This document shows positions 1 through 64,000 of a DNA stretch of 64,000 nucleotides, in pieces. The position numbers and the translations under genes were made by a program. The notes below the pieces were generated by a model, which ran no database searches, was not told where the DNA came from, and worked only from the letters and a program-made list of their open reading frames with translations. Origin of the DNA: Pavona decussata (Eukaryota); NCBI GenBank assembly GCA_977016875.1, contig CDRNST010000118.1, positions 1,674,001 through 1,738,000 on the forward strand, given 5' to 3'. Numbering within the stretch: the stretch's first letter is position 1; each line of letters starts with the position of its first letter.

Positions 1-3000
1 AACAACCTGATCGTACCATATTAGCTTACACAATTATACCTTTAAAAGGACACCAAACGATCTGAAAACAAAGGAGACAACATTTAAAGTGTTTTGCTTT
101 AACGATGTCGCGGGGTTGCCCTGTTCCATTTCAACACCCCAATCGGTTTCTAACTAAATCAGGTGGAAATCCTCGCCTCTTCGTCTAGGCCGTTAGTCAC
201 AAAGTCTGAAAGTCGTCACCTAAATTATGTTTCAAAACAGTTACAGCGATGAATTCCAATTATCTTTTCTTTGTAAATTCATCATACAGCTAGCAGGCCC
301 TTTACAAAGTGGCCTAGCGGGCCTGGTAAAGAGCCGAATTTGAGCCTGAGCGAGCTCCGAGAGGAAGACGAGGTTAGACCTCTTCCGCAATCTCTCCTCA
401 CTTATTTCAGCCTCTAGGAGTTAATGTCGTTCTCTTTAATAGCTCTCTTGTCCGACTATCCAGAAAGGCACTGCCAACTGTTTAATGTAAATTACGGTTT
501 TTGAACTTACCAGAAATAACAAATCTTCATCATCTTTAGTGTCACGTGGTCTTTCAAACATCAGTTCTGTATAGCCATCAACTTCAGATGCATTAAGGAG
601 TTTATAATCTTGGCTGGCATCAGGGAGAGGCTGCGAACGTCCTCGAGTAAAATAATCCTGTCAAATTTAAAGTAATTATACCACGTGAATCAAAGGAGCG
701 AATTGCGTGTCGCTTGGAACAGAAATGACTTCACTTCTATTTGAAGTTTGCAGATTGGATTTACAAAAAAAAATTCAAAAATAGTCTGGATTATTCAATA
801 AATCAAACTTCCATGGCTAAAAGGATCGTCTAAAATTCTTCTAACATTGGGAAATGAATGGGTTTTCTTTTTCTCAAACTGGATTGTTAATTACTTTCCT
901 TTATCTTTAATTCAGTTGAATTGCAATGACAAAGAGTAGTTTCACTCATGCTGTTTCATCCTGGAAAAAGACACACATAACGTTTAAAAGGTTTCGTAGA
1001 AAGTGAAACTCCCGCTTAATCTTCCACCACTTTGACAAGTGTTCGTTGGATCTTTCCGTTCGCATAATTAAATATTCATCAAAAATATCCAATAATTATA
1101 AGGTGAACGCTTGACAGTTTTATTTATAGAATTTAATCGAAATTCCATGACATGATTAGGAAAAAGACATGATTAGGAAAATACAACCACCAAAAGTTTA
1201 ACACTAGTTACACTTGAATATAGTGGCTCGATGAAAGTTGTATCAAATGCACTGTAAGCGATGAAAAAACCGCTTAAGGCCACTATTTTGCCTTCCCCAG
1301 TCACAGCTTCATTAAGCCTTGAAAAGAGCTAACGTTTAAAGCGTAGGCCGAGCAGAATCGCAAGTCATCGCACGGTTTGGAAATACCAACTTGCGCACGC
1401 AATCATCGAATCCGGTGCATGGGGAGTCAAACGGACTCGGAAGTATACACATGCAGATACAAGTTGCCAAAGCTGTCATTTCAGAGCAGCCTTAGTGGCC
1501 AAACCAAAGGAAACAGTGCAGACAAGAACTTGCGTTGATTGGTCAATGTCGGGTGGCCAACGAGTGCCACGAAGCCCACGAACATGAACTTGGTAAAAAG
1601 TGCACGTAGATCCTGCCCTACCGATTCACAAGCTAAAGCAATAAACTTGCGTTTCTATGGTAAATCGAGTCCTTTAGCTATAGGCTCCGTTACTAGCCCT
1701 ATTGGACCAGAGCGAAAGGCTTAGAATAAACTTACGTTCAAGTAACCTTTGCCGTTGCTGAACCCACCCACAATCACGTCGTAGTGCAACATGCCGTTTG
1801 GTGCTCCTTCAGCAAAACCAAATCCAACCCAACCAGTTGTCTTCACTCTCAGGTGATAAACCATCTTGTCAGACTGATCATCAAATTTCCACAAGAAGCG
1901 AAATTGGTCGTTGTCAATGTTATTGTTACCTACAAAAGTACGAAAAATAAAACAATTACACTGCATTCCGGCTCCTTTAACGACGACTTTGAGTAAGCGA
2001 TAGTGAATTTTCAATGTTCTTTTTCTTTGGTGAGGGGGGGGGGGGGGGGGGGAGTGGAGAGGGTTAAATCGCTCTATTTTGGATGTCATATTAAGTGACA
2101 ACATCTCCCAGACGTCCACCGATTTTCCTAGCTGAGCTTAACAGTTTGGGTGGTCACCTTAACCGAGAGATATTGTAGATTCATAGAAGTGGTTTTGTAA
2201 GCCTCCTCCGTTGTAAAAGCTTTCCCTCTCCATTGTAAAAGCGGTCGAGGTCAAGAATGTCAATTTTTCGGAATTGTGTAAGAGAATTACTAGATTCATT
2301 TTAAAATTCACTCGCCTACACTTACACTTCCCTATTTATTGCTAAATGTCATCCATCCCTAAACTTCCTGATACAATTCTCAGTACGTCACTTTCAAAAC
2401 AACCAATACCCATAAGAGCAGCTTCGTCACAAGAACAATCTCGTGACTTGAACCTCGCTTCCGAACAACAAGCTTGTGTTAAATCGGCATTGAGAAGTTA
2501 CTTTGCCGATTAGACCAGGTGATTCGATGGTCCTTTCGCTTTCCCATTACACCTGCACCTAATTTTATAACACTATCCTCTCCATCTCCATATGCAATAT
2601 GCGCATATCTACTGTGATGGACTACTTGCCCCTTTGTGCAATATAACTTTAAATCTGGATAGTAACAATAGCCCAGTTTACGCAACTTACTTGGTGCTGT
2701 TGGAGCAACAACTGTTGGTATACCTTTGACAAATGTAGGTGCTGCAGTGATGATGCCAGATGTGGTTGGCGCAATGATGTCATATGTGGCTGGTACAGTA
2801 CTGGGTGATGTGGTTGGCCCAATACTGGCAGATGTCATTGGTCCAATACTGGCAGAAGTGGTTGACGCCATACTGGTAGACATGGTTGGTGCAATGCTGT
2901 CAGTTGTGTTTGATGCGATCGATGTTGTAATGTTAGGTATTAGGATTACTTGATCAAAGCCTCTAGAAGTATGCTGTGAAAACAATTGAAACAAACCCAC

Positions 3001-4214
3001 TGATCGTCGTTTACGCGCCGGTATCTCTCCCAGTGATATCGATTGCACGTCTGTCGTAAAATGATAAGCCCAAACAATAAAAACTGGTATTCCTTGCTGA
3101 AAAAAACAAGAAAATTGGAAGAAATTTGAATTGAAGAAGAGGCCCCAAAATTGTATTGAAGAAGAAGCCCCGTCGGGATTAATCGGAAAAAAGTTTACAA
3201 CGATTTATGTTGAACTGCATTATTTTTTCCCCAGATATATGTGGTTAAAAATACGTCAGTTATCAGCAAAGAACTTATGATGCACCCCCACACCCACCCT
3301 GAGGGCAGGGAGTGGGGGGTGGGTGCTCAAGTTTCATAAGGGAAGACTCCCTCCAGCGTTCCCAGAAATGATACCCCTTTCAATTGTTAAAACCAAAAAA
3401 TTGTACCATATTCTTAATTTTGTTTATCGCTGAAAGATGATCTAAAGCAAGTAAAAGAAGTGTACCGCCTCAAATTTTACCGGCAGCAGTAAATCTTTTA
3501 TTTGTAATGTCTTCCATTCGTGCCCAGTGTTTGCTTCTCCTTTAAATACTCCAAACCTTTGCGGTTGCCCTTGCATATATAGTGCACCTTTGAGAACCTA
3601 TAAAATAGCAAAATTTTAAATCTCGCTACCCCATGGACTTAAAAGGCACCCCTCTCGGGTGTAGCCTCCTCATATAGCCTTTATATGGTATTCCTACTCC
3701 CACCCCAGCGCGATACACACAACTTGATCACCAGAAAGTAACAAATCAGTTATGTTTACCGGCAACCAAATTAAAGTTTAACTAAACTATTAATCGTTAG
3801 GAAGTCAGGCACGCAGTGAATATGTCCAAGAGCACAGTTTGCCCCGGGAAAAGACTTCCATTTCCGTGTTAGCTTGTCCAGTCCAGCTTGTCGAAGAACC
3901 GTAATACCCCGCGAGAGAGAAAGGCCAGACAATCTGCACACAGCCTAAGCATTAGTAAAATTATCAAATAGATAAGTACTACGGATCAGCTGGCATCAAG
4001 CTGCTTACCTCAATTGTCACATCAGTTTGTTGGTCCGTGGTGTTTCGCTTGCGATGAAATATTAATGTGGTTAGACCGTTCTCTTCTTTGGAGTAGCTCA
4101 GCATCCAGTCTTGTTTATAATCGGGTGTTGGTTGACGGTGGCCATTAGTGTAATAATCCTGTTGGAACAAATTAAGAGAAAAACTCACGTATTGTTCACC
4201 TTCAAAGAGGTTGA

Positions 4215-4345
4215 CTATGATGTGCCACATAAGAGAAAAAGAAGACACGTCTGAGAATTCAGTGTCCACCAGATGCTCCGATAGGGAATCGAACGTACGA
4301 TGCCCTTATCTCATGGAGGGTGCTCTAACCATTGAGCCACCAAGG
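4215..4345 (-). mobile_element. Decayed tRNA-derived SINE-like repeat
   Basis: Minus strand GGTGGCTCAATGGTTAGAGCA ... GTTCGATTCC. Confidence 0.5.
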
Positions 4346-5295
4346 CAACCGCAGTAAAATAATTGGCATGTTAGCGCAGGGGAGCAATGACGACCAGACA
4401 TTGCATGGCTGTCAGGTTTTCCCTGATTGTGAATTATATTACTTCTACTGGTCGCCAATACTTCTTCAGGTCAGTCTGAAGATGAACACGTGTTTGAAGT
4501 ATGCCATTTGACGTTTCGAGCGTTAGCACCTCTCGTCAGAGCAAATCGAGGAATTGTGGGTCTATACCTGACAAAAGGCTAACGCTCGAAACGTCAGCAC
4601 TCGAATCCTTACGGTACGTGGCCAAATTAATCATCAAGTCTTAATAAAACCAAAAATTCTCCCACTCCCGACCGACGCAGACGTTATTTTGAGCCTACAG
4701 TATTATTCTACCTTTAAGTAACCTGATCCACTCCTAACTCCACCAACGGCTACATCGTATCCAGTCATGTTGGTTGGTGCTTGAGTTGCAACACCAAATC
4801 CAACCCAGCCCGTGGCTCTCACCTCCACCATAAAGTGTAAAGTATCCGTGCTGCTATTGAATGACCAGGACGCGTTGTAGGTTCCATTGTTGAAAGACAG
4901 AAAGTTTGCAAAGTGTACAGGTTGAGCGTTGATTGTCGGCGTGACCACGGAGGGAGCTGCGGTCGTTTCTGCAATGTCTAAAAAGTTTCAAGGAAGAGTG
5001 ATTTTGTCTCGTGCAACTTCCTCTGGCACATTAAAACAATTTAGACACTATGGCCACTCGCTGCCTTTTACTACAACTGTTGTGACTTTTCTCAATTTAG
5101 GGAGGGTTACAGTGGAATTCCAGCAAGCCTTATTTGTTACTCATTTCAGCAGTTATACTTTTGCAATCTATTTGAGGTTTTACACAATCCCCAAAATGCA
5201 CCCAATTTGTTGAGAATATTTGGTGTTTTAAACAAAATAGAATTGGGAGGAACTAGAGAATAAAGAGAAGCGGAGAAAAATTACGATTTATGTAA

Positions 5296-5555
5296 TGGCC
5301 AGTGGTTGGATCGGGTACACCCTCAGCCGAGAAAACCAACAAGCAATGTCACCAGGCATGCACTGAGATGGAACCCACAGGGAAAGATAAGTCGTGGTCG
5401 CCCCATGGACGGCTGGAGGAGAACGATAGACGATGAGGCGGGCAAGGCAGGGTACACCTGGAGGGAGCTTGAAACGCTAGCCCAAAAAGATTGAGATGGC
5501 GGGCAGTTTTCCATGGACCTATGCTCCACTGGGAGAAGTAGGGAATAAGCATAAC
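5296..5555 (+). mobile_element. 5'-truncated RTE-clade LINE fragment
   Basis: Degenerate translation WIG.TL.RKPTSNVTRHALRWNPQGKISRGRP...WRRT...LAQ matches the typical RTE ORF C-terminus. Confidence 0.8.
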
Positions 5556-6429
5556 AAGTGGAAATTAAAGTTTGAAGTTGATTGATGAAGAGGAACATTG
5601 ACAGTCCATTATTAGACTGATCTGGGTTTGTTTATACATCTTCTTCTTTTATGCTGTTTCTCTTCTAAATTGGATAAGCTTTCAGAGAAATCAAATGTAA
5701 TCCCCGCCCGTTACGTCGTATTTATTCGTGCCTGTTACAGTTTGAATCAGCTCGACGCCATTTGTTTTGTCAGGATTGACGAAAGTGAAGCTGGGTTGTC
5801 CAAATACTGTTGACTGGAAATCGTGTTTTCGCATTAACTTCAGTAAGCGGGGCGCTCTTGAGCTCTGCCTAAGTAACTGGATGGTCTATGATTTAAGTAA
5901 TGATTTAGAAAGATCCCGGGGGAAGGTACCTTACTAGTTCCACGGAGCTAAATTCCTTCAAAGCCCATGTCATGCTAAAAACGATCGATGCAAATAACTT
6001 TGGAAGCAAACCTGGTGCTGTGTTGGTAGTTTCTCTGACTTACTTGGTGTTGGTGTAGTGGCAGGAATAAATGTAATGTTTACATTCCCTCTAAATGCTA
6101 TTGTTTGGCCCAGCTGCACGTCATCACTTGTAGAATTAAAAGAATACACAAAGATGGATGGCATTCCCTTCTGAAAAGTAAAATAACACCAATCATTTCC
6201 TTAATGTTCTTGTGTTATATTTTTTTCATCAAGTTTGTCTTGTTTTTTTTTTATGAAATACTAGTTCTTGAAAATTTGTTGGTAATTGCTTTTGGTGAAG
6301 TGAATCTGAAATGGAAAATATTGAAGTTTATTGTTACTTAGTTCATAAAACGTACTTTATAGTGGTGTGTTTTATATCCCTTCATAATCACTTTCTACGC
6401 CGCGCAAAAGTCTTATGACCATTGCTTTA

Positions 6430-6957
6430 AGCCTGGTTTACACGTACGACACAAGCATAAGAATAAGCACAAGCACAAGGATGTTTACACGTGCGATAAG
6501 CATAAGCATAACGTGACATACGCAAGCGCAGAAGCAAGCAAATTTGGCGCGATTGCGAAGCCGGGCTGCCTTTTGGCACGAGATTTGATTCCAACGTGGC
6601 GGAAAATGGCAACGCATGAGTAACTAGATTGTACGCTGACAACTTGTCACTGTTTTTCAGTTTCCTTTAATCGCGCAAATTCTTATGCTTGCGTCGTCCC
6701 GGTTTACACGTACAACGCAACGACGCAAGCATGAGCACAAGCACAAGAGAATGGAATGGAATGGAATCGTTCCATTCTCTTGTGTTTGGGCTTATGCTTG
6801 CGTCGTTGCGTCGTACGTGTAAACCAGGACGACGCAAACATAAGCACAAGCGCAAGCACAAGGCGCTTATGCTTGCGTCGCACCGATTTACACGTAGGTT
6901 TCTTGTGCTTACGCTTGTGCTTATGCTTATGCTTGCGTCGCACATGTAAACCAGGCT
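6430..6957. mobile_element. PIF/Harbinger-type MITE (TTA TSD) with subterminal hexamer repeats
   Basis: tta|AGCCTGGTTTACAC...ATGTAAACCAGGCT|tta, with GCACAA/GCATAA-type arrays on both arms. Confidence 0.8.
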
Positions 6958-6961
6958 TTAA

Positions 6962-7505
6962 GAACGGTGCCTACTTTTGTTACTGCACATACGCTCTGCG
7001 CGTCTAGTGATGCTCGGGTTTCCTATGGATAGTGCTTACTAATACAGGGATATTTTTGCGCCGCGGGTTAAAACTTTGCGGGAGAAAGCAGAACTTAGCA
7101 AGTGCTCTTGGTATCCCAAAAGAAAATTGGGGGTAATCATGCATTTTAAAGAGATGGGAAAGTTTCCATTTGAAAAAAAAACAACAACAACGCCATACGT
7201 TGCTTTGTATTTTACTGCTTTTTGAAATAAGTGTTTCTTAATTATCTCTAAAACAAATGCCCCGCTATCCCCAATTTTCTTTCTGGATTTCAGTAGCCCA
7301 TAGATCTGACTTTCCCGCCTAGTACAAAAATATTTAAAAAAAAATATATAAAAAGTCTGTACTGAGAGCGCAATTAAATTTTTTTTAAGTGGTATATTTC
7401 GTTTGGATCCACCAAACTTCGTCAGCCACAATGCAAATTCCAGAGCAGGAAAACAATATTTTTGATTCTGTATAAAAATACTTCTGTATTTATGAAGCAC
7501 CGTCC
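6962..7505. mobile_element. TTAA-flanked MITE (Kolobok-like)
   Basis: ttaa|GAACGGTGCCT...AAGCACCGTCC|ttaa. Confidence 0.7.
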
Positions 7506-8544
7506 TTAAATTTAAGAAAATCAAACGGAAATTCTACTTCTCCTTAGTTAAATCTCTTCAACGCAAACTCAATAGGTTCTACACACTCGGACTCATTGGT
7601 ATGGAGTTAGGGGTGAAGGTGGTGGGGGACAATGGTAGTTCTTCCGTGAATGTGTAGGGATAATGAAAAGTATAAGTTAGCTCAACAATTTAGTCAATCA
7701 TGGTAAATTCACTATGCTATGCTAAAAAATCATATCCAAGCAACTGTAACTACATCTTATACAAACCGCCTATTCGGGAAAAGCTCAAGATAGAATTATG
7801 CAACGAGACTCGGTGACTTTGAAATCATGACTGCTACTCAATTTTCGTCAATCGAACAACAAATGACAAAGAACATCCCTAGACCACCTTGAAAACAAAG
7901 CCTGGAGATGATCCTGATTTCAATGGATTAGCGATTCACATTGTTTACCTCAATTGCAATATCTTTAGCATCGCTGGTGTTTCGTTGGCGATAAAACTTT
8001 AACTTTGTTACGCCGTTCTCTTCACTTGAGTTGATCAACATCCAGTCCTGCTGGGAGTCCAGTGCTGCCTCGCTGTCTCCTTCAGAGACCGAATAATCCT
8101 AAGGGAATTAAGTTAAACTAAGAAACTTGCATTAATTTCAGTACCGTATATCATGTTGTTTGAAATGGCCTCGATCCATTGCCACTATGACAAAGTGTTT
8201 GGTAGGAATCTGGGTGTAATAATGCCGTCTTTTGTGTCAAATGGTTGGAAGAAAGCACAAGTTGGTTTTCAATTTTAAAAATGAGAATTCCGGTTAACCA
8301 AAAAAATGGTAAGTTGTGTTATGGAAGCAGAAAATACAACTTCACTTGGTCAGGAAAAAATTGGGATGTTGAAAGAACGTCTCACACTTCTAAACCAGCT
8401 TAATGTGGCTACTACGGCTTTTACTTCCGTGATTCATACCCGTTGATTGCGGTGCGGTCGATATAGGCGATCCATGCGCTACTGATTCTAGCGTTTCTTA
8501 TCGAACTGTCGCAAGTTTACGTAAAGATACGCTAAACGCTTTTG

Positions 8545-9045
8545 TTGTGCATGTTCTCTGCGAAGATTTGCGATCTGTCACGAAGGAAGCGGACCTGCCA
8601 CTCGCGAAACAGTTCTCCTCTTCGGGTTACACAACGGAAGACATGATCGTGTCCGTGGTGAGAGCAGGCCTCCGTAACAACACGGAAAGACGTCGTGCGG
8701 ACGGCTGCTCAATATTTGGCTGCCGAACGCGCGCGTTCCATGCGACATTAGGGACCGTCATATCAGAGTGCGAGTACGAGGTTGAGTACAAGTACGACTT
8801 TCAAAATTTTAAACAGGTTATATATCCCCAGAACTCTTGCTTCTTCCCGTTGTTCACCAGCAGATAAGGAGACCCTAGAAACAAGATTGGTGTGAGAAGC
8901 GGTTATCTAAACCACGCAAACTAGATTTGAAAACTCGTACTCGTAGTCAAATTTTAAGGTCAATATTTAAGTAACATCACGAGCGCTTCGTTCAATAGCT
9001 TATTTCACTGATGAAGGGACAGTAGTCCAGAAACATCTAAACTTT
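8545..9045 (+). mobile_element. Decayed Penelope-like element 3' end (GIY-YIG C-terminus), interrupted by a MITE at ~8750-8962
   Basis: EDLRSVTKEADLPLAKQFSSSGYTTEDMIVSVVRAG resembles the EH.R.....PVA.HF....H....M.V tail of PLE GIY-YIG. Downstream CTGATGA..GGAC-agta-GTCC.GAAAC is a hammerhead-like core. Confidence 0.6.
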
Positions 9046-10600
9046 TTACAATATTCCCAGCGTCCGACCCACCCTTTGGTTTTCTTCAAAACTATAGACA
9101 TAGACTTAGCCTACCTGTAGATAACCTGTACCATTACTGAACACTCCACCAACAGCCAAATCCACATAGTTCATTGCACTGTCAGGAACATGAAAAGCAA
9201 AACCAAACCCGACCCAACCTGTCACGCGTACTTCCACTAAGAACTCAAACGCGTCTGAGGTCTCGTTGAAATTGTACGACACATTGTAGATTCTGTTATG
9301 AAGTACAATCCTGTTGAAAACTCATCACTAGCTTTGGTGTAAAACACCGTGAACAGTGCCAAAAGATATAACTGATAAACAGCCATTGGGAAATGAACTG
9401 ACTTCTTGAGAACCAAAGGATTAAATGCTCCAAGTCCCTCGTATATCTTGCTTTTTACAAATACCGAAAGGCCAATATGTTTAATCAGTTTCTATTTGTT
9501 TATGATTTGCTTGGATATTGTGGTTAATGTTTTGACTGTTTAAGAGCTTAACTTGTTTAGATAGGTTCCAATATCACTTTGTGGGTAAACTTGAAAAACA
9601 TCAAAGACAAGGAAGTTAAACTCCTTTCAGCACTCTGAAGTCAGCCTTCGACCCGTCTGATGTGTTTTGAAAATCAAATAAATACACTATAGTGTGACCA
9701 TTCAAAGAAAGCTATTGAGTACTCTCCTGTATCGTGAATTCTTTATGCTGTACCAGATGGATCCCACTCGTGCGTCTTTGGATGAAATCCTAAAGTGTGA
9801 CCTCACAAATTTATAACGATATTTAGCATGTACAATCTAAAAGACTTATGTATATGTAATTTTTATAGACCCCTATGATCTCTGGCCGCGAAAGGTATGA
9901 CATGCACACTTCCAATCTAACTGATCAATGACATTGCCTGTCATGAATGCCGACAATGAGTAAGCACACTTTTATATTTTTCCCTTAAAATCAGTGGCTA
10001 GTACTGCCACAAGTGCTTAACGACCGAAAGATTCTATTAGCATAAAAGTTGTCTAATTTCAGAGCGGTCCTTTATAGGAATCCTAAGGCCCCTTATTTAG
10101 ATTTTAGAATAGGATTTTAGGTTTAACAGTTACACGTTCCCAGTTTTTCTTTATGTCAAACATTTGCAAAGTACCCTGCTCATACGAGAATTACTTTTAC
10201 GCCATTAAGGGTGCAATATCAAGTGTGCGTCTGTTTGGGAGACTAAACTATAGTTCCGCTATAAAAGGGTAAGCCCCTCCTTCCTCCCACATCTTTGTGA
10301 GCGTGAAATGGAAGTTTCGACGCCGTCCAGTCGTGGCACGTTGTTGACTCGAGCATCCTCTGAAAAAATATGCCTCAAATTTCATAATATCATCACAGTA
10401 ATGTAAGGCATCGGTTTCTAATTCGGTTAACGGGGTTTATTCCGAAAATTAACTCAATTTTATCAGTAAGGGTAAGTAGAAAACGATGCATGTTGTTTGT
10501 CAGTTGTTTACGCTCTGATGGTTGATTGACAACTGAAGGTAAAAATGGTCAGGACAGTCCTCTTTTATACCAAAATTTCCTGTTTAACATTGATGCCCAG

Positions 10601-10652
10601 GGCCCAGTTGCTCGAAGCATGGTTAGCGCTAACCCAGGTTAAATACCATGAC

Positions 10653-10684
<32 letters not shown>

Positions 10685-10719
10685 CCGTTAGCGCTAACCA
10701 TGCTTCGAGCAACTCAGCC
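10601..10719. mobile_element. ~119-bp palindromic Harbinger-type MITE (CAG TSD)
   Basis: cag|GGCCCAGTTGCTCGAAGCATGGTTAGCGCTAAC...GTTAGCGCTAACCATGCTTCGAGCAACTCAGCC|cag. Absent from the paralogous site at ~51040. Confidence 0.8.
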
Positions 10720-11271
10720 CAGATCGTTAAGAAGGATCGTTGAAATTTGTGGATGAGTAGACAAATTAGCGTAGAGCTAAATTGTGGATAAAGTGTCTGG
10801 GTAGTCCTGAAAATTGGATACAGACTGTCGCCTGTGTCCAGTTCCAGGGACTGAACAATTAATTCGAACTAGATCCTTGCAATTAAATATAAATATTTTT
10901 TAGAAGTTCTATGTGGGGATTTTATTGTTGTTAATATTGTAAGCTTTTTATGGTATTTTAGTGACATTTTTTAACTCTTTTATATTGTAACACACGACTA
11001 CTTCAGCTCTGCTACATTTTTCTCATCGTGTTTAACTAAATGGTAAATTCAGGGTCCGAGTAAAAGGGATATATCCTGTATACAGTCCCTCGCACTAGCG
11101 TATACTCGATTTTTGGTACGTAAGGTACTCATCAAAAGCCACATTCAAGTATAGTGACCGCCAGGTAGAGAGCCAGCCAACCTCTCAGGATACATTTCTA
11201 AAGCACCTATATAGCTACATATGCTACAGAAGGAATTGCACATAAAAACATGAGAGTGAAGTTAAAAATTC

Positions 11272-22903: not shown

Positions 22904-22955
<52 letters not shown>

Positions 22956-52536: not shown

Positions 52537-55500
52537 TTACAACAGCAAAACATTTAGCAATGTTATGGTTAGAGTAACAATCCCATAGATGCCTGAACAC
52601 AGAGTGGACGCCGCTGAAGGATCTGTTGGAATAGGCTGCTCTGTTACCATGACAACTTTCTCCTCCCATCCTTTTTTAGAATGTTCACCAAACGTTCTTG
52701 GGTCATTGGCGTCCAAAGCGCTATAGGCCCAAACTATATTCACTTCTCCGCCGGGCTGCAACAAAACCAGAAAAAAATAAAATCAGCCACATAAAAAAGT
52801 ATAGTTGTGCTTGTGGTGAGGGAAACCGAACATGGTGGTTTTGGTATCGCTTTCTATTTATCGAGAATCCTGGCTGAAAATCTGAATTGAATATCCAATT
52901 TGAGCGGATGGGAAAAACTCCAGAACGATTGGCCCACCTTAAAATACGCTATTCGTTAACGGTGTTAGGCTGTTTGGACCAAAATTTACCATTTTATTTG
53001 ACTTAACCGATAAGCCGATTGTTTTTTATATTGAGTAAGGTAACGTTTGTTTAGTAGAGTTTCAAAACACGCTAGGAATATCATGCATTATTAGGGGAAA
53101 TGCAAACTAGCTGTATTTATGTCAAATTAAACACGTGGAAGAGTGTTTTCTGCCGATTTCCAAACACCGAGAAGTGGGTTGAGAAAACGAGGCGTAGCCG
53201 AGTTTTTTTTCTTTTAACCAACTCCAGTAGAAAATCCGTATCAGTGCAAATAGATTTACAAAAAGCTGGGGCGAAAAAGACAAAAAAAAAAAAAAGAACC
53301 TGAACAGTCAAATAAATTGATAACGCATATGAAAGCATATAGCGATGGAGCCCAAGAAATCCGAATCTGGAGTTTTAGTGAGGGATTAACATTAGGCCTC
53401 TGTGGATTACATATATAAGACATAGTGCTTACCGTAAAAGCTAGATCGTTGGGATCTTTGGTGTCAGTTCGTCTTTCAAACATCAGCTCTGTGTAGCCAT
53501 CGACTTCAGATGCATTGAGAAGTTTGTAATCCTGGCTTTCGTCAAGGGCAGGCCGCATACGCCCTATAGTTTTGAAGTCCTGGGGAACAGACAGTTAAAG
53601 GGGTTAATAAAGATAACATCAAAAAAACAACCCTGGATAATCGTTTCCCGCAAGAGTTCTCCTGGTCAGCATTCAAACAACAATTTATGTACAATTAACG
53701 TTAGGTTTAGGCCACCTTCATGGCAACCTTTATTGCAACATACAAATGAAGCGAACACCTATTTCAGTATTAACGATTTTGATCTTTCAGATCATGCACT
53801 TTCTACGGCCACGACATCGATATCCGAAAAGATTGACTGCATATTCTAGAATGAAAATTGACTTTACTGTTCTCCACTAATCAGTTGTTCAGTCATATCT
53901 GCACAAGCAGTTGTTGACATAAAATCTACTGACGTGTATAAGTACTTAGAATTTATCAAGTAGTTTACATTGGCTTCAAGACTCCAGCCAGCAAGGCGAG
54001 ATCTGTTTCAATCACTGTTGTATTCCCTGTTTCTCGGTCTAAAGCACTGACTCAATGGAACGAACCTCTGAATATCCCCTTCCTTTTCTTCGGGGGAAAT
54101 TCACTGATGAAACAGCAACTCACCCATAAATATCCTTGGCCATTGCTATACCCGGCAACGATCACGTCATAGTCCACCATGTCGTTAGGAGCTTTCTCAG
54201 CAAAACCAAATCCAACCCAACCAGTTGTCTTCACTCTCAAGTGAATATATATCATGTCAGTCTGATCATCAAAACGCCACAATAAAGCGAATCGATTCTC
54301 GTCAAAGCGGAGAGTGAATTGGGGCATTGCTGTAGAGAGGGTTAGGAATAGCAAATCATTATGATGACGAAAGCTGAACCCGATTAAGCCCATGGTAGTA
54401 AAGTTGCCCTTACGTCAAAGTTAATCACTGACTGCAATAACAAAGCAACTGTTCTTAACCAGTGAATTTTAATACGTTTCATGTTTTACTTGTATCAGAA
54501 CGACTGTTTATGTTTGTTTATGGCTAAATTTCTGCGTGTGTTAGCCTCCCAAGCAATCGTTTTGGAGGAGTCGTGGAACAAGAGTAATATGATTTCCCAA
54601 ACACGACCGCGTAGGCTGTTTGGTTTTATCAACAGAGTCGATTAGGCAATTTAGTCACCATAAAGCGATTTAAAACGTTTCAAGCGGTAGCCCTTCGTCA
54701 GAGTGAAATGACAAAGGGCTAATGCACGAAACGCAACTCTCGATACTCTTTACAGTGGACAAACTACCTTATTACCTCAGTTGATAAAACTGCCAAACAT
54801 TCGTTTCCCCTCCTCCATCGACGCAGAACCACAGTTCCTTTAAAAACTTTAAAAATCCCTTATGTACCCACAAGTAGATGTGTAACCTTATCTGGGCCAA
54901 CGTAGCTGATGTTTCCCTCCAATGACTTCAATCTAAATGCAATTGTTGTGACGTTATAGCATTTTGGTGTCGCATCTTTTTCTTCACGGAACTCTCTGTT
55001 TCCACGGTAGCCATGTATTGTCGGGCATGTGTACCCAAATTTAGAGACTTTTATGAAAACTAACTTTAACAATTGTAACGGCAATTTCCGAAGAAGTGCA
55101 TAGAAGAATCGTCAAGAATACTCTCGCGGAATTTCTCTTCGGAGGGTACCGGGGATTATTGTGCCACTACAGTAAACAATATTATCACAACCCCACATCT
55201 TGTCAGCGCCCAACGACAGTTTTCTCGCAAATCCTTTGCTTTTAAAGCACCTTAGGTTCATTTCAGGCCGCCCCATAATATTTTTATCTTTTCGGTCATT
55301 CTAGGGGAACTTGAGTCTTTTCGAAATTTTTAGGGCATAATGTCCATTTCCCGAAAACCTTATCGAACCTTAGGTCTTATTTCCTTTCCGAAAATCTTAG
55401 CTGACCTCTCTTCGGTACCTAAAATCACATTTTTTATCAATCCGAAAACACAAGATCTTAAATTTCCCATATCACGAACGTTCGAGGTGAAACTCCCTTT

Positions 55501-58500
55501 AGCAAATTGTAGGGGATTAAGGGCCTTCCGAAACGATCTGTTGGGTGCCCCTGATTGTGTGTGCAACCTGCAACGACTGGAACTGATTGCATATCACTGA
55601 CATACCTGGAATGAATGTAACTTCCGGCCGAACACCTGGAAGACTGTGCTTTAGGAACTGGCCTGGTTGTACGTCACTCGTAGAATGGTAAGCCCATATA
55701 AGGAACATTGGCATTCCTTGCTGAAAATACGATGAAATATAAATGAATGAAGGGAAAGCTAGAATAGTTAAGTGCCATTCCTTGCTGGAAATCAGATGAA
55801 ATAATTAACAATTGGCCTGATTATAGATAGGATACAATAGCGAAGCGCTATAATTGAGGATGAGGCATATCATGTGGAGACATTTCGAAAACCCCTACCA
55901 TCATGATCTGTCTACTTGTGTCAACAAGGTTGAAGATGGACATGACAAAACGTATTAAGTATATGTAGGACATTCAGATAAAAGTCTAAACAAGGTACCT
56001 AACAAAACTAGCGTAGAAAATTCCCAGCAAAAAACTATTCAAATTAGAAGAGAAGAAACAGAGCTTTAATTGACCGTAGGTCGTGTTTATGTTCTGAAAG
56101 AAATTTGTAGATATCCGGTCTCACTCTGGTCTCGTTGATATTCGAAAAGGTGAGGGGATAGGACCCTGGCAAAAAACTTCCAACTGACTTAAAAATCTCC
56201 ACATGTCTAGGAAAAATTAATTTAATATGGCTTCAGTACAATGGCTGTAACATTAAACTTTCACTACAGACTTTGCATTTCCGTGATCACTATTTACCAA
56301 GTACGGTTTTCAGTTTGCCTTATGCGCCGTTCTGAATATCCTCTAAAGGAACATAAAGCAACCAGTGATACATAATAATTCATTCTTATTTATTCACCAG
56401 GCTTAAAATATCCCATCAAATTTATTCCATTGCGCATATGCCACACGCTGACATTCAAATCCTAGCAATACGCAGGATGATTATACCATGAACCTAATTT
56501 AAGGCCTTAGCTCCCACGAGTCTCTTGTAGATCAGTGGTAGAGCATCCGAACTAGTAATTGGAAGGACTTAGATTCGACTCCTGATGAGAGCACTCGCAT
56601 TTCCTTTTTGCAAGTATGCCTCTGTCACTCACTGAATAACGCATCATTCTTAACTAACCTTTTTAAAGTAAAAAAAGAAAAAAAAAACGGGCGCAGCCTT
56701 TGTCAGAAAATTCCGTGTACAGCATTATCACGACGCGTTTTACCTGAATAACAACGTCCTTTTGTTGGTCGTTGGTGTCTCGCTTGCGATAAAACCTTAA
56801 TGTTGTTACACCGTTTTCTTCGCTAGAGTAACTCAGCATCCAGTCCTGTTGAGAGTCTTCTGGTGGTGCTCCAAAGCCACCGGTAAAGTAATCCTAACGA
56901 AATAACAAAAAGGAATATAGCCTTTACTATTTTGCTTAAATTGTCCATGATGGAAAGGAACAGTTCTGTCTTCCTCCGCGACCACTACAGACCATTAAGA
57001 TGTATTACCTTCGGATTGTTTAGAGGTCGGTATATTGGATATGGAAAACTAAATATAAGTCCTTTTTATGTTTTAGAACTTTTATTCTGATGAAAGTGGC
57101 AGGATGAAAACGGCGATTACAATCTATTTAGTGTAGCGATATAGAACAGCAAATTTCTAAACTAGCCATCAAGACCGTATTAACCTTCGTGCTTTATAAC
57201 ATTTTGATCGGTTCGATGCCATCAGATACAGGTAGGGAAATATTATGATTTATCAGGCAATCCACTGAAACCGGTCCGCCGTCTGCCATTGGATCTTTCT
57301 TTCTGCATCTGTATGACAAGGCGACTACAGACTTAACTTAGATTCCATTTAGGAAGCATTTGGAAAGACAAGCACGGATGTTCAAAGGAACCATCGTGTT
57401 TCTGTTGAAAACCTGCCGAGAACTAACCGGAAACCTTCAGTTAGCTTTCACGTTGAAACCTTCCAAATAGTCTTAAAATGAAACCCATGAGAATTTGCGA
57501 GTTAAACGGCAAAAACGTTTAGAAATAGAATACTTTTAGCTTGCCTTCAAATCAGGGAAAATCACCAGGTGCAGTTTTTTTATGGTAATGATCGCAGTGT
57601 CATGTTATTTTGCTGTATGACTGAAATGATCGTCACAAGGTTCAAGCACAAATTGTTATGAAACCACAGAAGCTAAACTAGTTACCTTTAAATATCCTGA
57701 TCCGCTTAAAACTCCACCAACAGCTACGTCGTATCCAACCATGCTGGTTGGTGCGTTAGTTGCAACACCAAAGCCGATCCAACCTGTGGCCCTCACTTGT
57801 ACCATAAAGTGTAAAGTGTCCGTACTGCTTTCAAACATCCAGGAAGCGTTATATTTGCCATTGTCGAGAGAAACAAAGTTTGAGAAATGTGCAGGTTTAA
57901 CAGGCGTAGGAGTGGCTGCTGTTGAAATATAATTTAAAGTTGTTGCTCGTCAATTGCGATCGACCAAGCAGGTGTTGGCGGTCTTTCAAAGAGATTGTAG
58001 TTAGGGCGATATACATATTACACAACGTTTCGGACCGAATTTGTCGCAGCAAAGGTCTACAGATGCGATACAGTCAAGACAAGACAAGACACTTTATTTA
58101 ACGTGGTGAACATGCTTAGCCATACGGCTAGTTTGTAGATCAGTATACAACGGTAAGAAAATGATGCTAAAATAAACATCAAAAACAAAAGTCAACGGAC
58201 TTTTGGCCCTCATCGAAGGGTTCCAGCAATTTGAAAAAGGAAAATTGTTAATCGAGAGTATAACCCACTCAGAAACTTTTTCGTCTTGCGTATGCCTCAG
58301 TTTTGCAGTGCAAGTTGTAAGTAAGTAAGTAAGTAAGTTTATTTTGCCACACCACAAATACAATGTAAACAAAAAAAAATAGAAAAAGATAGATTTAACG
58401 ATGGCGAGGAGACCTAAAGGAAACTATGAAGCTTATATTAATTAGGTCTCCTCAGTTATTATTTTACAAGATGAAATCAAAAAAGAAGATAAGAACACGA

Positions 58501-61500
58501 CGACGGATACAGTTACAATTTCATACAATTACAATGTCAAACGGAAGGATATATTACGAAAATAAAAGCTACAAGAAAATTAAAACTACTAATAGTTATT
58601 GTAGAAAAACGCCTTAAGTGCTTTTTTTAAAGGAGATAGAGGAGGACGAGAAACAATTTGCGAGAAACAATGACTAGTGAAACGCTGCCTTTAGTGCTGG
58701 CATTAATTACCTATCTGAAAGGTAGTCCATTTTACTCATGCCGTTTTTTTTTTTTTTTTTTTAATCTGTTGGGACGGATTCTCATTTCGTTATATCCAGA
58801 ACCTTTTAGTATGACAATAAAACTCGCAAGTCGTATAGAGATAGCAAACTAATTTTAACACCCTTAGTTTCACTGAATCTCTGAAGAAATGTATACAGGA
58901 ATCATCAAGAATTCCTGAGAGTAACTTCTCTTTGCCGAGTTATAATACTACTTGACAGAAGTGGCTTCTAAACTCCACATCCCACGCTTTTAAAATACCT
59001 CTTACTGACTGCATATCACTAACGTACCTGGTGTTGGCGTAGTAGCAGCAGCAATGAATGTAACTTCCCGAGAACCTGGATAACTGTGCTTTGCAAACTG
59101 GCCTGTTTGAACGTCACTCGTAGAATGGTAAGCCCATATAAGGAACATTGGCATTCCTTGCTGAAAATAAGATGAAATATAATAGTGTTTTACAACGCTA
59201 CTTTTGAGAACTTATCTTCGTTTAATGAAAGGAGTTTGGCACTGAAAGTGTTTCTAGGGGCTCCTTAACAAAAAAGGATCACTAAGTTGAATCTAAATTC
59301 TCCCTCATTTGAAATGCGAATTAATCTAAAATGGCTTTAGCTTCAGTTTGCCATCTTTCGAGACATTAGGTCGTAAGTCTTACATAAACTGTCGATTTTC
59401 TTTCCTTCAAAACGCAGATCCAGCCATAGTCAGAAAATCTCTGCGGGAATTTTGTCACGACGCATTTTACCTGAATAGCAACATCCTTTTGGTCCGTGGT
59501 GTTTCGTTTGCGATAAAACCTTAGCGTTGTTACACCGTTCTCCTCGCTAGAGTAACTCAGCATCCAGTCCTGCTGGGTGTCTTCTGGTGGTGCTCCGAAG
59601 CCACCGGTGAAGTAATCCTAACAAAAAGGAATATAGCCTTTATTATTTTTCTTAAGTAGTCCATGATGGAAAGGAACACTGTTCTGTCTTCCTCCCAGAC
59701 CGCTCCAGACCATTAAGATATATTACCTTCGGATTGCATGATTAAAGGTATGTTGGATATGGCAAACTAAATAGGAGCCTTTTTTATATTTTAGAACCTT
59801 TATTTTGGTGAGAGTAGCAGGATGAAAACAGCGATTACAATTTATTTAGTGTAGCGGTATAGAACAGCAAATTTGTAAACTAGCCTTCTCAAACTCATTA
59901 ATAATTCATCAAGAGATGAATTATTAACGAGACTACAGACTTAACTTAGATTCCCTTTAGGAAGCATTTCGAAAGACAAGCACGGATCTTCAAAAGAACC
60001 ATCGTGTTTCTGTTAAACCTTTCGAGAATAGCGGAAACCTTCAGTTAGCTTTCACGTTGAAACCTTCCAAATAGTCTAAAAATAAAACCCACGAGAAACT
60101 GCGAGTTAAACGGCAAAAAACGTTTTAAAAAGAATGCTTTAGCTTGCCTTCAATTCAGACAAAATCATCGCGCGCAGTTTTTTTATGGTAATGATCACTG
60201 TGCCATGTTATTTTGCTGTATGACTGAAATGTTAGTCACAAGGTTCAAGCACAAATTGTTATGAAACCACAGAAACTAAACTAGTTACCTTTAAGTATCC
60301 TGATCCGCTTAAAACTCCACCAACAGCTACGTCGTATCCAACCATGCTGGTTGGTGCGTTAGTTGCAACACCAAAGCCGATCCAACCCGTGGCCCTCACT
60401 TGTACCATAAAGTGTAAAGTGTCCGTACTGCTATCAAACATCCAGGAAGCGTTATATTTGCCATTGTCGAGAGAAACAAAGTTTGAGAAATGTACAGGTT
60501 TAACAGGCGTAGGAGTGGCTGCTGTTGAAATATAATTTAAAGTTGTTGCTCGTCAATTGCGATCGACCAAGCAGGTGTTGGCGGTCTTTCAAAGAGATTG
60601 TAGTTAGGGCGATATACATATTACACAACGTTTCGGACCGAATTTGTCGCAGCAAAGGTCTACAGATGCGATACAGTCAAGACAAGACAAGACAAGACAC
60701 TTTATTTAACGTGGTGAACATGCTTAGCCATACGGCTAGTTTGTAGACATACAACGGTGAGAAAATGATGCTAAAATAAACATCAAATACAAAAGTCAAC
60801 GGACTTTTGGCCTTCATCGAAGGGTTCCAGCAATTTGAAAAAGGAAAATTGTTAATTGCAGAGTATAACCCACTCAGAAACTTTTTCGTCTTGCGTATGC
60901 CTCAGTTTTGCAGTGCAAGTTGTAAGTAAGTAAGTAAGTAAGTAAGTTTATTTTGCCACACCACAAATACAATGTAGACAAAAACAAAAAAAATAGAAAA
61001 AGATAGATGTAACAATGGCGAGGAGACCTAAAGGAAACTATGAAGCTTATATTAATTAGGTCTCCTCAGTTCTTATTTTACAAGATGAAATCAAAAAAGA
61101 AGATAAGAACACGACGACGGATACAGTTACAATTTCATACAATTACAATGTCAAACGGAAGGATATATTACGAAAAGAAAAGCTACAAGAAAATTAAAAC
61201 TACTAATAGTTATTGTAGAAAACGCCTTAAGTGCTTTTTTTAAAGGAGATAGAGGAGGACGAGAAACAATTTGCGAGAAACAATGACTAGTGAAACGCTG
61301 CCTTTAGTGCTGGCATTAATTACGCATCTGAAAGGTAGTCCATTTTACTCATGCCGTTTTTTTTTTGTTTTTTTTTAATCTGTTGGGACGGATTCTCATT
61401 TCGTTATATCCAGAACCTCTTAGTATGACAATAAAACTCGCAAGTCGTATAGAGATAGCAAACTAATTTTAACACCCTTAGTTTCACTGAATCTCTGAAG

Positions 61501-64000
61501 AAATGTATACAGGAATCATCAAGAATTCCTGAGAGTAACTTCTCTTTGCCGAGTTATAATACTCCTTGACAGAAGTGGCTTCTAAACTCCACATCCCACG
61601 CTTTTAAAATACCTGTTACTAACTGCATATCACTAACGTACCTGGTGTTGGCGTAGTTGCAGCAGCAATGAATGTAACTTCCCGAGAACCTGGATAACTG
61701 TGCTTTGCAAACTGGCCTGTTTGAACGTCACTCGTAGAATGGTAAGCCCATATAAGGAACATTGGCATTCCTTGCTGAAAATAAGATGAAATATAATAGT
61801 GTTTTAGAATGCTACTTTTGAGAACTTATCTTCGTTTAATGAAAGGAGTTTGGCACTGAAAGTGTTTCTAGGGGCTCCTTAACAAAAAAGGATCACTAAG
61901 TTGAATCTAAATTCTCCCTCATTTGAAATGCGAATTAATCTAAAATGGCTTTAGCTTCAGTTTGCCATCTTTCGAGACATTAGGTCGTAAGTCTTACATA
62001 AACTGTCGATTTTCTTTCCTTCAAAACGCAGATCCAGCCATAGTCAGAAAATCTCTGCGGGAATTTTGTCACGACGCATTTTACCTGAATAGCAACATCC
62101 TTTTGGTCCGTGGTGTTTCGTTTGCGATAAAACCTTAGCGTTGTTACACCGTTCTCCTCGCTAGAGTAACTCAGCATCCAGTCCTGCTGGGTGTCTTCTG
62201 GTGGTGCTCCGAAGCCACCGGTGAAGTAATCCTAACAAAAAGGAATATAGCCTTTATTATTTTTCTTAAGTAGTCCATGATGGAAAGGAACACTGTTCTG
62301 TCTTCCTCCCAGACCGCTCCAGACCATTAAGATATATTACCTTCGGATTGCATGATTAAAGGTATGTTGGATATGGCAAACTAAATAGGAGCCTTTTTTA
62401 TATTTTAGAACCTTTATTTTGGTGAGAGTAGCGGGATGAAAACAGCGATTACAATTTACTTAGTGTAGCGGTATAGAACAGCAAATTTGTAAACTAGCCT
62501 TCTCAAACTCATTAATAATTCATCAAGAGATGAATTATTAACGAGACTACAGACTTAACTTAGATTCCCTTTAGGAAGCATTTCGAAAGACAAGCACGGA
62601 TCTTCAAAAGAACCATCGTGTTTCTGTTAAACCTTTCGAGAATAGCGGAAACCTTCAGTTAGCTTTCACGTTGAAACCTTCCAAATAGTCTAAAAATAAA
62701 ACCCACGAGAAACTGCGAGTTAAGCGGCAAAAAACGTTTAAAAGAGAATACTTTAACTTGCCTTCAATTCAGACAAAATCATCAAGTGCCGTTTTAATTT
62801 TTATGGTAATGATCACCTGGCTCTTTTGGCCACTACGCACTTCTTCCGTAGAATGTAAAATTACTAAATAAATTGCTTTGCACGTTTAATTTTTTTTTTC
62901 TTACTATAAATTATATTGTATTTCATTGTAATAAGTGTGAATAAAATTAAATTGAATTGAATTGAATTGTGCCATGTTATTTTGCTGTATGACTCAGTGA
63001 AATGTTAGTCACAAGGTTCAAGAACAAATTGTTATGAGACCACAGAAGCTAAACTAGTTACCTTTAAGTATCCTAATCCGCTTAAAACTCCACCAACAGC
63101 TACGTCGTATCCAACCATGCTGGTTGGTGCGTTAGTTGCAACACCAAATCCAACCCAACCCGTGGCTCTCACCTCCACCATAAAGTGTAAAGTGTCCGTG
63201 CTGCTATTGAACATCCAGGAAGCGTTATATTTGCCATTGTCGAGAGAAACAAAGTTTGCAAAATGTAGAGGTTTAACAGGCGTAGGAGTAGGCATGACTA
63301 CTGACGAGCTGGATGCTGTTGGAAGATAATTTTAAATTTTTGCTTGTCATTTGCGTTTGCCCAAGTAGGTGCGAGCAGTCTTGGAAGAGATTGTACTTAG
63401 GGCGATATATACATGTTACCGAATAAACAAAGCTCCGCACGTGGTACAGTAAAATCGCAAAATGTATATTTAAAGTTACACATTTTACTAAGGTTGACAG
63501 GTGCAATACACGTCAACGTACTTTTGCCCGCATTTTTGCTCGTTCATGGAAGAATTCCAGCAACGGCAAAAGGTAAAATTTACATTTGCCGGGTACAGTA
63601 AACTTTACAACTTTTTTGTCATACGTGTGTCGCAGTTTTGCTGCAATCCAACTTGCAATTGTGAGAAACGATGACTAGTGAAATAAAGCCTTTAGTGAAC
63701 ATTTTTTTTTTATGTTTAGCCGTGTAAGAGGTAGGTCCGCTTAATCTACTCATACCGGGTTCTTTTATGATCTTCTGAGACCGGTGGGGGCGGGCGGATT
63801 TCCACTCTGTTAAATCAAGTACCTAGCCTTTGACAGTTATGTGACAATGAAACTCAGAAGGCTTATTGAACGACCAAAGGACCCCACACTCACCTACAGG
63901 TGTCGTGGTCGACGGTCCAATAACAGATGTGGTCATCGCTGTCAAAGTTGATGTAGTAACTGCTGGCGGTGTTGATGCACTCATCGATGCCAATGTTGAC
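52537..64000 (-). CDS. Gene D (5' end outside window): S/T-rich linker + >=4 DOMON domains + GPI-like C-terminus
   Basis: Exons 63894-64000 (partial, STLASMSASTPPAVTTSTLTAMTTSVIGPSTTTPV), 63062-63315, 62085-62231, 61642-61774, 60289-60521, 59471-59617, 59028-59160, 57686-57918, 56744-56893, 55606-55720, 54124-54329, 53433-53579, 52537-52755. All GT-AG and in frame. Motifs TGW[VI]GFGVATNAPTSMVGYDVAVGG, QDWMLSYSSEENGVTTLRFYRKR, LIWAYHSTSDVQ..QF.KHS. Confidence 0.88.
56445..56640 (+). repeat. tRNA-like interspersed repeat (related copies at ~16440, ~20870, ~33925, ~44025)
   Basis: CAAATCCTAGCA...CAGTGGTAGAGCATCCGAACTAG...TTCGACTCCT; degenerate cloverleaf. Confidence 0.5.
58318..58653 (-). mobile_element. 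5'-truncated CR1/L2-clade LINE 3' end
   Basis: (TTAC)n tail, 3' stem-loop GAGGAGACCTA...TAGGTCTCCTC and ORF tail KKALKAFFYNNY*. Empty site at ~63655. Confidence 0.65.
60923..61266 (-). mobile_element. Duplicated copy of the same LINE 3' fragment
   Basis: Same sequence and flanks. Confidence 0.65.

Follow-up and report, generated by a model that had tools for sequence, protein, structure and literature searches.

DOMON-only proteins with GPI-type tails and a conserved Met/His pair encoded by a tandem gene array of the coral Pavona decussata

Electron transfer by DOMON cytochromes is established in fungi (CDH/AA8), plants (AIR12, CYBDOM) and bacteria. The plant protein AIR12 consists of a single extracellular DOMON with a signal peptide, a glycosylphosphatidylinositol (GPI) anchor, and Met and His at the ligand positions. 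Met/His six-coordination is typical of electron transfer rather than of reversible heme capture, and all characterised DOMON hemoproteins known to us (CDH/AA8, AIR12, CYBDOM, EBDH and NxrC) are electron carriers in which the heme is tightly bound. To our knowledge, the only animal DOMON thought to hold heme is the single one fused to cytochrome b561. Here we describe a 64,000-nucleotide (nt) stretch of the Pavona decussata genome (GCA_977016875.1, contig CDRNST010000118.1; G000:C118:1674001-1738000), hereafter the window, in which four paralogous genes (g1-g4) lie head-to-tail, all on the minus strand. They encode proteins with three to five DOMON domains and a Met/His pair at the positions expected of heme ligands. 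It is plausible, at a shade under an even chance, that these domains bind heme b via the pair.

Several animal DOMON proteins provide points of comparison. The DOMON of dopamine beta-hydroxylase (DBH) has no heme, no axial ligands and no pocket, and an aspartate-lined metal site is present (PMC4846438). The Met/His pair is missing from DBH and from sugar-binding DOMONs; the spacing of the two residues is 93 in Drosophila CG8399, 98 in CDH and 99 in CcPDH (PMC10691727). The insect protein Knickkopf organises chitin (PMC4140639). From the coral Acropora millepora, Hayward et al. (2011) described three membrane-bound DOMON proteins induced after settlement, B5 (C_A005-G11), B12 and B93, one of which is expressed in the oral ectoderm, and suggested heme or sugar binding (PMC3204972). 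By description, these resemble the proteins studied here in coming from the same animal order and in being extracellular DOMON proteins with a hydrophobic C-terminal segment, and Acropora orthologues of the window genes were found separately. Unlike the present analysis, that study addressed expression only, read the tail as a transmembrane helix and did not remark on the domain repeats or the Met/His pair (PMC3204972). No biochemical study of such coral DOMON proteins is reported in the literature searched. An earlier sequence-only reading knew of no characterisation of the family; coral proteins of this kind had been noticed by 2011.

Each DOMON domain is encoded by three exons (A, B and C). 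This triplet is a regular unit: tblastn searches with representative exon peptides located 15 copies in the window and a further one directly upstream, in the flanking piece L001. The DOMON-like open frames of the window are on the minus strand throughout. The locus holds 16 domains, of which 15 touch the window: five in g1, four each in g2 and g3, and three in g4. The four head-to-tail DOMON genes proposed by the sequence-only reading are borne out by the exon map, the Pfam matches and open models with GT-AG introns. Its count of 15 domains applies to the window; the locus has one more because g1 begins off-window with a fifth domain. Exon boundaries are motif-anchored, with A-B (GYLK|DY) and B-C junctions in phase 0 and C-A junctions in phase 1. 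Exon C encodes the last strand (xGxPxFLIWAY...H..xG...LIP), followed by a linker. The joined models were used locally for frame checks, alignment, a hidden Markov model and the tree; database searches used exons or database proteins.

Pfam DOMON (PF03351) covers exon A with profile positions 1-59 and exon B with positions 56-116. Per-exon scores of 32.8-40.4 bits lie above the curated cut-off of 32.7 (E 1e-8 to 4e-10), which agrees with the domain identity assigned from the letters, and the profile also matches 65/65 domains of a family alignment (A2, mean column identity 32%). Met is present in 16/16 domains of the locus and His in 15/16, the domain without it being the first of g4 (g4U1). 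Inside the window, 13 domains have both residues, the number given by the sequence-only reading. Across A2, Met50 is conserved in 97% of domains (63/65) and His143 in 95% (62/65), placing both among the dozen most conserved positions. Met occurs with His in 62 of the 65 domains and with Lys in one; the other two lack both residues, and in no domain does either stand alone. The Met immediately precedes strand 5 and the His the last strand, at a spacing of 93 residues, the same as in CG8399 (PMC10691727). By position, the pair may correspond to the axial ligands of heme-b DOMON cytochromes (CDH/AA8, CYBDOM, AIR12). The DOMON that lies beside a cytochrome b561 domain in protein P0082 aligns with the family over its full length (E 7e-34), its Met and His falling in the matching columns.

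When the A2 profile was compared with PDB, the best match was DBH (4ZEL, E 1.2e-18), followed by the heme-b subunit NxrC (7B04_C, E 1.7e-5) and, marginally, the AA8 cytochrome of Coprinopsis PDH (6JT6, E 0.009). The 4ZEL alignment has Leu at the Met position and ends before the His. In 6JT6 the family Met aligns with chain residue 65, which is the ligand Met83 if the chain begins after an 18-residue leader; the heme ligands of this protein are Met83 and His182 (PMC6881789). A profile of the A exons alone had no PDB match at E up to 1. A phmmer search of PDB with a CDH-cyt-matching domain from Styela reached DBH only and provided no residue-level bridge to the CDH His. The protist DOMON-monooxygenase P0135:1-520, used as a query, returned no named animal MOXD1 or TBH, and an ESM Atlas feature search added nothing beyond "DOMON domain-containing protein".

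We modelled the fold with AlphaFold2 on a domain of an orthologue (P0001:274-440) that groups with the window middle domains in the tree, using the A2 alignment. The model (pLDDT 95.3) has ten strands, as expected of the DOMON beta-sandwich (ten to eleven strands), with the Met ahead of strand 5 and the His ahead of the last. Its top PDB fold matches (Foldseek, VIA-align) are all DOMON folds. The DBH DOMON 4ZEL comes first (Z 18.3, TM 0.72), followed by the heme-b DOMONs 6JT6 (Z 14.8), 1D7B (Z 14.4), 2IVF_C (Z 12.7) and 7B04_C (Z 12.1), and the sugar-binding CBM9 entries score Z 8.3-8.6. The 6JT6 and 1D7B alignments start and end at offsets that would allow Met50 and His143 to fall on the ligand residues. 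As modelled, the fold is nearer to heme-binding than to sugar-binding DOMONs.

These comparisons bear on which kind of DOMON is encoded here. The sequence-only reading had regarded the proteins as animal analogues of AIR12. Likenesses include a DOMON-only extracellular protein with a signal peptide, a GPI-type signal and Met/His. AIR12 has one DUF568-type plant domain, whereas the coral domains are tandem, joined by linkers and, on sequence, members of the DBH/MOXD1 lineage. Neither CDH-cyt (PF16010) nor DUF568 (PF04526) matches the window exons at E up to 1, and the best solved relative is the DBH DOMON; thus, the domains are not of the AIR12 type, and the likeness would be one of analogy, not membership. 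Within A2, 8/65 domains also match CDH-cyt and 1/65 EB_dh, and DUF568 matches 0/65 at E 0.01.

The DBH/MOXD1/tyramine beta-hydroxylase DOMON (4ZEL) is the closest solved relative in sequence and fold, its metal-site aspartates are kept in the coral domains (PMC4846438), and several coral annotations name orthologues "DBH-like monooxygenase protein 1". The coral proteins differ from this type in lacking copper monooxygenase domains, in having three to five DOMONs rather than one, in their mucin-like linkers and GPI-type tail, and in keeping Met/His where human DBH has Leu and no His. Similarity to CDH/AA8 (1D7B, 6JT6) and CYBDOM (FRRS1/SDR2, CG8399) is seen in the fold (Z 14-15, rmsd 2.7-3.1 A over ~150 residues, rmsd being root-mean-square deviation); these have a fused flavin, pyrroloquinoline quinone or cytochrome b561 partner that the coral proteins lack, and the AA8 similarity is marginal. 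Knickkopf is an animal extracellular GPI-anchored DOMON protein without a catalytic domain (PMC4140639), as the coral proteins would be, but it combines DM13 with a single DOMON, whereas in the coral proteins DOMON alone is detected, three to five times.

Putative signal peptides were identified for g1 (MAVLRLHLLTLFAVYAKCSS, off-window in L001) and for g2 and g3, which share MSYVQLYVLILFLFYPSTSG. The tails of g1-g3 follow the pattern ...P(T/G)(D/-)PSAAS(T/I)LCSGIYGIVTLTITLLNV(L/F)LL, at which the protein ends; the g1 tail is DPSAASTLCSGIYGIVTLTITLLNVLLL, then a stop. In the form ...PSAAS-TLCSG-IYGIVTLTITLLNVLLL, the last 25 amino acids (aa) are uncharged. By rule, the tail comprises a small-residue site (SAAS), a 5-residue spacer and 17 hydrophobic residues running to the last residue, with a mean Kyte-Doolittle hydropathy of 2.1-2.2. 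Judged in this way, the C-terminus would be a classical GPI-anchor signal. The tail pattern, with 20-25 uncharged residues at the end, is kept in orthologues of Montipora, Acropora, Pocillopora, Desmophyllum, Oculina, Actinia and Actinostola. Linkers rich in S/T/P/A separate most domains. They span ~95 aa after g1 domain 1 and ~28 aa in g2 and g3, and ahead of the last domain ~72 aa in g2 and g3 and ~90 aa in g4. The mature proteins are nearly cysteine-free. Thus, the architecture read from the letters (signal peptide, DOMONs each followed by a mucin-like linker, PSAAS tail) applies to g1-g3, except that g1 domains 4 and 5 are joined directly, with no linker; in g4 the tail is hydrophobic but without PSAAS, and the signal peptide is out of frame. 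The long hydrophobic translation that ends the C3 open frame of g2 and g3 was considered as a second membrane tail and rejected, as it is a T-rich tract past the predicted donor.

No catalytic exon was found in the window or its flanks: the upstream flank adds the signal-peptide exon and the downstream flank the tail exon only, so that the absence of catalytic domains first noted within the window extends to the off-window exons. The 14 kb upstream of g1 contain no DOMON and no other convincing coding frame. Cu2_monooxygen (PF01082) has 25 exon matches in the genome and none on contig C118. Such exons adjoin DOMON exons on C188, C486, C85 and C4:1.55 Mb, and these are true DBH-like genes. Further DOMON-only arrays are present at C4:237-262 kb, at C226:89-233 kb and on C66.

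A profile of the 16 A exons matched 965 proteins at E up to 1e-3. Among the best 150 of the 965, many are under ~200 aa, and those identical to the window are exon-sized fragments only. Full-length relatives occur in Montipora, Acropora, Porites, Pocillopora, Stylophora, Desmophyllum, Oculina and Actinostola, under the names "uncharacterized", "DOMON domain-containing", "mucin-12-like" and "DBH-like monooxygenase protein 1". One of them, P0001 (640 aa), has a signal peptide, three DOMONs, linkers and a tail. Also found were one Actinia tenebrosa protein and proteins of the tunicate Styela clava with 3, 6 and 12 DOMONs. Pfam searches of the window exons and full-length orthologues detected only DOMON and no DM13. 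The architecture, and the terminal domain especially, is conserved across Scleractinia and Actiniaria (stony corals and sea anemones). Also identified were family DOMONs in other settings. In Oculina patagonica P0120, P0173 and P0176 (named DMBT1-like), the domain is fused to CUB and other extracellular domains, and P0104 combines it with a MACPF match that is weak (E 5e-4) and falls short of the Pfam cut-off. The domain has been shuffled among surface proteins.

A tree of 52 domains separates the tail-proximal domain from the rest with 100/100 support, as an old orthologous type. Middle domains of one species group together, a sign of independent internal duplication or homogenisation. The first domains of g2 and g3 fall among the middle domains belonging to these genes and are therefore chimeric; g4 DOMON 1 is on a long branch. 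Between g2 and g3, exons are 98.3% and introns 97.1% identical, with 19 synonymous and 24 nonsynonymous codon differences. Given these identities and the internal domain duplication, "expanding array", the term used in the sequence-only reading, is a fair description: the array is young and grew by gene duplication and lineage-specific duplication of middle domains. Truncated B-exon starts (DYLTI.NRLP.ADSQTNM, stop) occur on the minus strand at 16172-16285 and 20604-20708, each 60-170 nt ahead of the true B exon of g3 domain 3 and domain 2, respectively; these look like relics of unequal duplication in introns.

Evidence for splicing comes from contigs of four runs, from four studies under the same species label, that we guessed to be RNA; none is recorded as RNA. 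These RNA-like contigs show GT..AG joints at the predicted sites 12950/13499 and 12152/12817, and the predicted B donor of g3 DOMON 3 at 15960 is also a joint (the C donor at 14645 is predicted only). One contig of 1.7 kb chains A-B-C-A-B-C(tail). Between 15960 and 13680 it has 140 unmatched letters, corresponding to 115 nt for a C exon and 25 nt for the A exon that follows, and this length is that of the structure predicted for exon C4 of g1 (donor CAG|GTATGT at 55605) with the acceptor at 13705. The contigs are 85-98% identical to g3 and contain a B-exon variant, DYFTSGRST (contig junction 16083/16996), that matches no window gene and was not found in the 602-Mb assembly at up to 2 mismatches. 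Their source is a paralogue or allele missing from the assembly, or else a divergent animal bearing this species label. Thus, the contigs establish transcription and splicing, as modelled, for the family but not for these four copies specifically. Three intronic stretches (12443-12623, 13710-14252 and 16425-16605) are covered in each of the four RNA-like runs to hundreds or thousands of contig-depth units and show many loose ends; these behave as dispersed transcribed repeats, not as gene parts.

The proposal that the domains bind heme b derives from the conservation of Met and His at 97% and 95% among domains of 32% mean identity, from the placement of the Met on a 6JT6 ligand and from the fold scores. 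Each DOMON would then bind one heme b, and the proteins would carry several b-hemes on glycosylated stalks that stand on the outside of ectodermal cells. Electrons could enter from ascorbate, superoxide or a membrane cytochrome b561 and leave to extracellular acceptors (Fe3+, O2 or reactive oxygen species); alternatively, the proteins could buffer heme. That GPI-anchored strings of three to five b-type cytochromes form an animal extracellular multi-heme relay is a further step, and an unlikely one. Equally unlikely is its extension, by which the coral expansion into several arrays with dozens of domains would serve to move electrons between the cell surface and acceptors in seawater or mucus, in roles such as extracellular superoxide turnover or ferric reduction, roles that share the same low likelihood. 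Alternatively, heme binding might serve to capture, buffer or pass on heme or iron, at the surface or toward symbionts, rather than to relay electrons. The ligand evidence is the same, the locus contains no electron donor domain, and many domains per protein, many genes per genome and at least three other DOMON-only loci would suit a stoichiometric binder. We consider this quite improbable, however, as the characterised DOMON hemoproteins are electron carriers with tightly bound heme and Met/His ligation is of the kind that serves electron transfer.

Several observations weigh against heme binding or a relay. No electron donor was identified, CDH-cyt and DUF568 are without matches in the window exons, and the spliced contigs, at 85-98% identity to g3 and with a B-exon variant absent from the assembly, do not show expression of these four copies themselves. 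The equivalence of the His is based on spacing and alignment ranges, which are compatible with His182 of 6JT6 and His163 of 1D7B, and not on a residue-level structural alignment. DOMONs of the DBH-like monooxygenases P0082 and P0135 have the Met/His pair as well, and a monooxygenase gene of this type in the P. decussata genome has the Met. Heme is not known to have been reported in monooxygenases of this type; thus, the pair may have another role and may, from its distribution, be ancestral to the DBH/MOXD lineage and lost in vertebrate DBH. The GPI signal is judged by rule, and the corresponding Acropora tail has been read as a transmembrane segment (PMC3204972). Moreover, the closest solved relative in both sequence and fold is the heme-free DBH DOMON (E 1e-18, Z 18.3; PMC4846438), and the DBH aspartate cluster (D54, D69, D81, D110 and D114 of A2) is 97-100% conserved. 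These points lend substance to a non-heme surface glycoprotein, a real possibility at somewhat less than an even chance. In a non-redox protein of the glycocalyx or of adhesion, given comparable weight, the DOMON repeats would be spacers or modules for binding sugar, lipid, metal or protein on mucin stalks, and Met and His would be pocket residues kept by descent, in a structural or other non-heme role. The Acropora relatives are filed as extracellular matrix or adhesion proteins, are expressed in oral ectoderm and are switched on at settlement (PMC3204972), and GPI-anchored Knickkopf performs no electron relay (PMC4140639). A spacer or adhesion role, however, does not predict that Met and His are kept or lost together at top-dozen conservation, and the sugar-binding DOMONs, which lack the pair (PMC10691727), are more distant in fold (Z ~8.5 vs ~14). 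Lastly, the genes could be an annotation artefact, namely pieces or decayed remains of DBH-like monooxygenase genes, or a repeat array without function. The name that coral annotations give to orthologues, the frameshift in g4 exon 1 with its degenerate first domain, and the 24 nonsynonymous and 19 synonymous codon differences between g2 and g3, which indicate no strong constraint since duplication, could be taken in this sense. Given that the frames of g1-g3 are open throughout, each with a signal peptide and tail of its own and canonical introns only, that contig C118 is without a Cu2_monooxygen exon, that the architecture is conserved across Scleractinia and Actiniaria and that spliced family transcripts exist, this explanation is largely refuted and very improbable.

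If the heme reading is correct, a lipid-anchored, multi-domain, DOMON-only family with intact ligand residues would add a new type of redox or heme-handling protein to those of the cell surface. Extracellular superoxide is both made and controlled by corals, whose symbionts need a supply of iron, so that these DOMON proteins are testable candidates for both functions. If no heme is bound, the locus is an ordinary, fast-duplicating family of surface glycoproteins. In either case, the recurring misannotation "DBH-like monooxygenase protein 1" is corrected for genes without enzyme domains, and invertebrate MOXD-type DOMONs are seen to keep a ligand pair that human DBH lacks.

The gene models are listed in the table. 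The start of g1 is 5.6 kb upstream of the window, and g4 ends 1 kb downstream of it in the hydrophobic tail. The frame of g4 is open for 621 aa from 9318 (first DOMON to stop) with GT-AG introns, and exon 1 has a 1-nt deletion in a T run (9318-9330; by comparison with g1 and g3), which leaves the signal peptide MAVYQLYLLALFTVFYTKAS (9386-9322) out of frame. This deletion is either genuine and pseudogenising or an error in a homopolymer. In g4 DOMON 2 an insertion precedes the His (SQHTSRG). Intron 7 of g2 (33629-40198) is 6570 nt long, compared with 882 nt in g3, an extra ~5.7 kb. A layout in which the terminal domains are separate single-domain genes was ruled out by the strong phase-1 donor and acceptor between C4 and A5 of g1 and by the contig chain, which supports one transcript. 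Two assembly gaps lie inside introns and are therefore crossed by no reading frame. Each run of N begins 795 nt past the donor, and the exons to both sides follow the expected order. Intron 6 measures 1614 and 1658 nt when the estimated gap lengths are included, close to the 1597-1623 nt of the equivalent ungapped C-A intron 3; the aligned parts of intron 6 and of intron 3 of the preceding repeat unit are 97.7% identical. Across both gaps, physical continuity and the number of middle units are provisional.

Table. Positions of the DOMON genes, their domains (exons A, B and C in brackets) and the assembly gaps; coordinates are those of the window unless a flanking piece (L001, L003) is named.
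Feature	Position	Strand	Remarks
Gene g1	52537..64000 (in-window part), start L001:5585	-	15 exons, 982 aa, 5 DOMONs, complete open frame, introns all GT-AG
g1, in-window part	52537..64000	-	domains 2-5 and end of domain-1 linker exon
g1 DOMON 1 and signal peptide	L001: A 5313-5585, B 1435-1593, C L001:299 to window 63894	-	
g1 DOMON 2	61642..63315 (63315-63062, 62231-62085, 61774-61642)	-	Met in TSMVGYD, His in FAKHS
g1 DOMON 3	59028..60518 (60518-60289, 59617-59471, 59160-59028)	-	97% identical to g1 DOMON 2
g1 DOMON 4	55606..57915 (57915-57686, 56893-56744, 55720-55606)	-	C exon 115 nt, without linker
g1 DOMON 5, terminal type	52537..54329 (54329-54124, 53579-53433, 52755-52537)	-	GPI-type tail
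Gene g2	29578..49364	-	12 exons, 828 aa, 4 DOMONs, complete open frame, introns all GT-AG
g2 DOMON 1 and signal peptide	46894..49364 (49364-49098, 47558-47409, 47098-46894)	-	
g2 DOMON 2	42040..45296 (45296-45070, 43698-43549, 42238-42040)	-	
Assembly gap	41109-41245	.	g2 intron 6, between exon 6 end 42040 and exon 7 start 40425
g2 DOMON 3	32129..40425 (40425-40199, 33628-33479, 32465-32129)	-	contains intron 7
g2 DOMON 4, terminal type	29578..31326 (31326-31121, 30572-30426, 29799-29578)	-	GPI-type tail
Gene g3	11930..26244	-	12 exons, 831 aa, 4 DOMONs, complete open frame, introns all GT-AG
g3 DOMON 1 and signal peptide	23770..26244 (26244-25978, 24434-24285, 23974-23770)	-	
g3 DOMON 2	18877..22146 (22146-21920, 20541-20392, 19081-18877)	-	
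Assembly gap	17948-18082	.	g3 intron 6, between exon 6 end 18877 and exon 7 start 17218
g3 DOMON 3 and ~72-aa linker	14645..17218 (17218-16992, 16109-15960, 14981-14645)	-	
g3 DOMON 4, terminal type	11930..13705 (13705-13500, 12951-12802, 12151-11930)	-	GPI-type tail
Gene g4	511..9386 (in-window part), last exon L003:8784-9005	-	9 exons, 3 DOMONs
g4 DOMON 1	6044..9386 (about 9386-9115, 8098-7949, 6170-6044)	-	degenerate: His lost, IWAY -> FVYSF
g4 DOMON 2 and ~90-aa mucin-like linker	2691..4977 (4977-4712, 4158-4009, 3096-2691)	-	
g4 DOMON 3, terminal type	511..1929 (A 1929-1736, B 657-511)	-	C exon (His and hydrophobic tail) off-window

Other DOMON loci of the genome were also inspected. The true DBH-like genes are tandem as well, at L004 (G000:C188:11500-19500), C188:53-60 kb, C188:76-84 kb and C486:486-591 kb, and the DOMON of the gene in L004 keeps the Met (GKMKGADIVIGWV). 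Among the DOMON-only arrays, the one on C4 (L005, G000:C4:237000-246999) consists of very regular units of ~1.65 kb that are almost identical to one another, with the Met kept. The array on C226 (L006, G000:C226:133000-142999) is of a more divergent type, extends over ~140 kb and also keeps the Met. The next gene past g4 is an intronless 336-aa frame on the minus strand (L003:5383-6390, 3.6-4.6 kb downstream of the window start) that resembles a rhodopsin-type seven-helix receptor.

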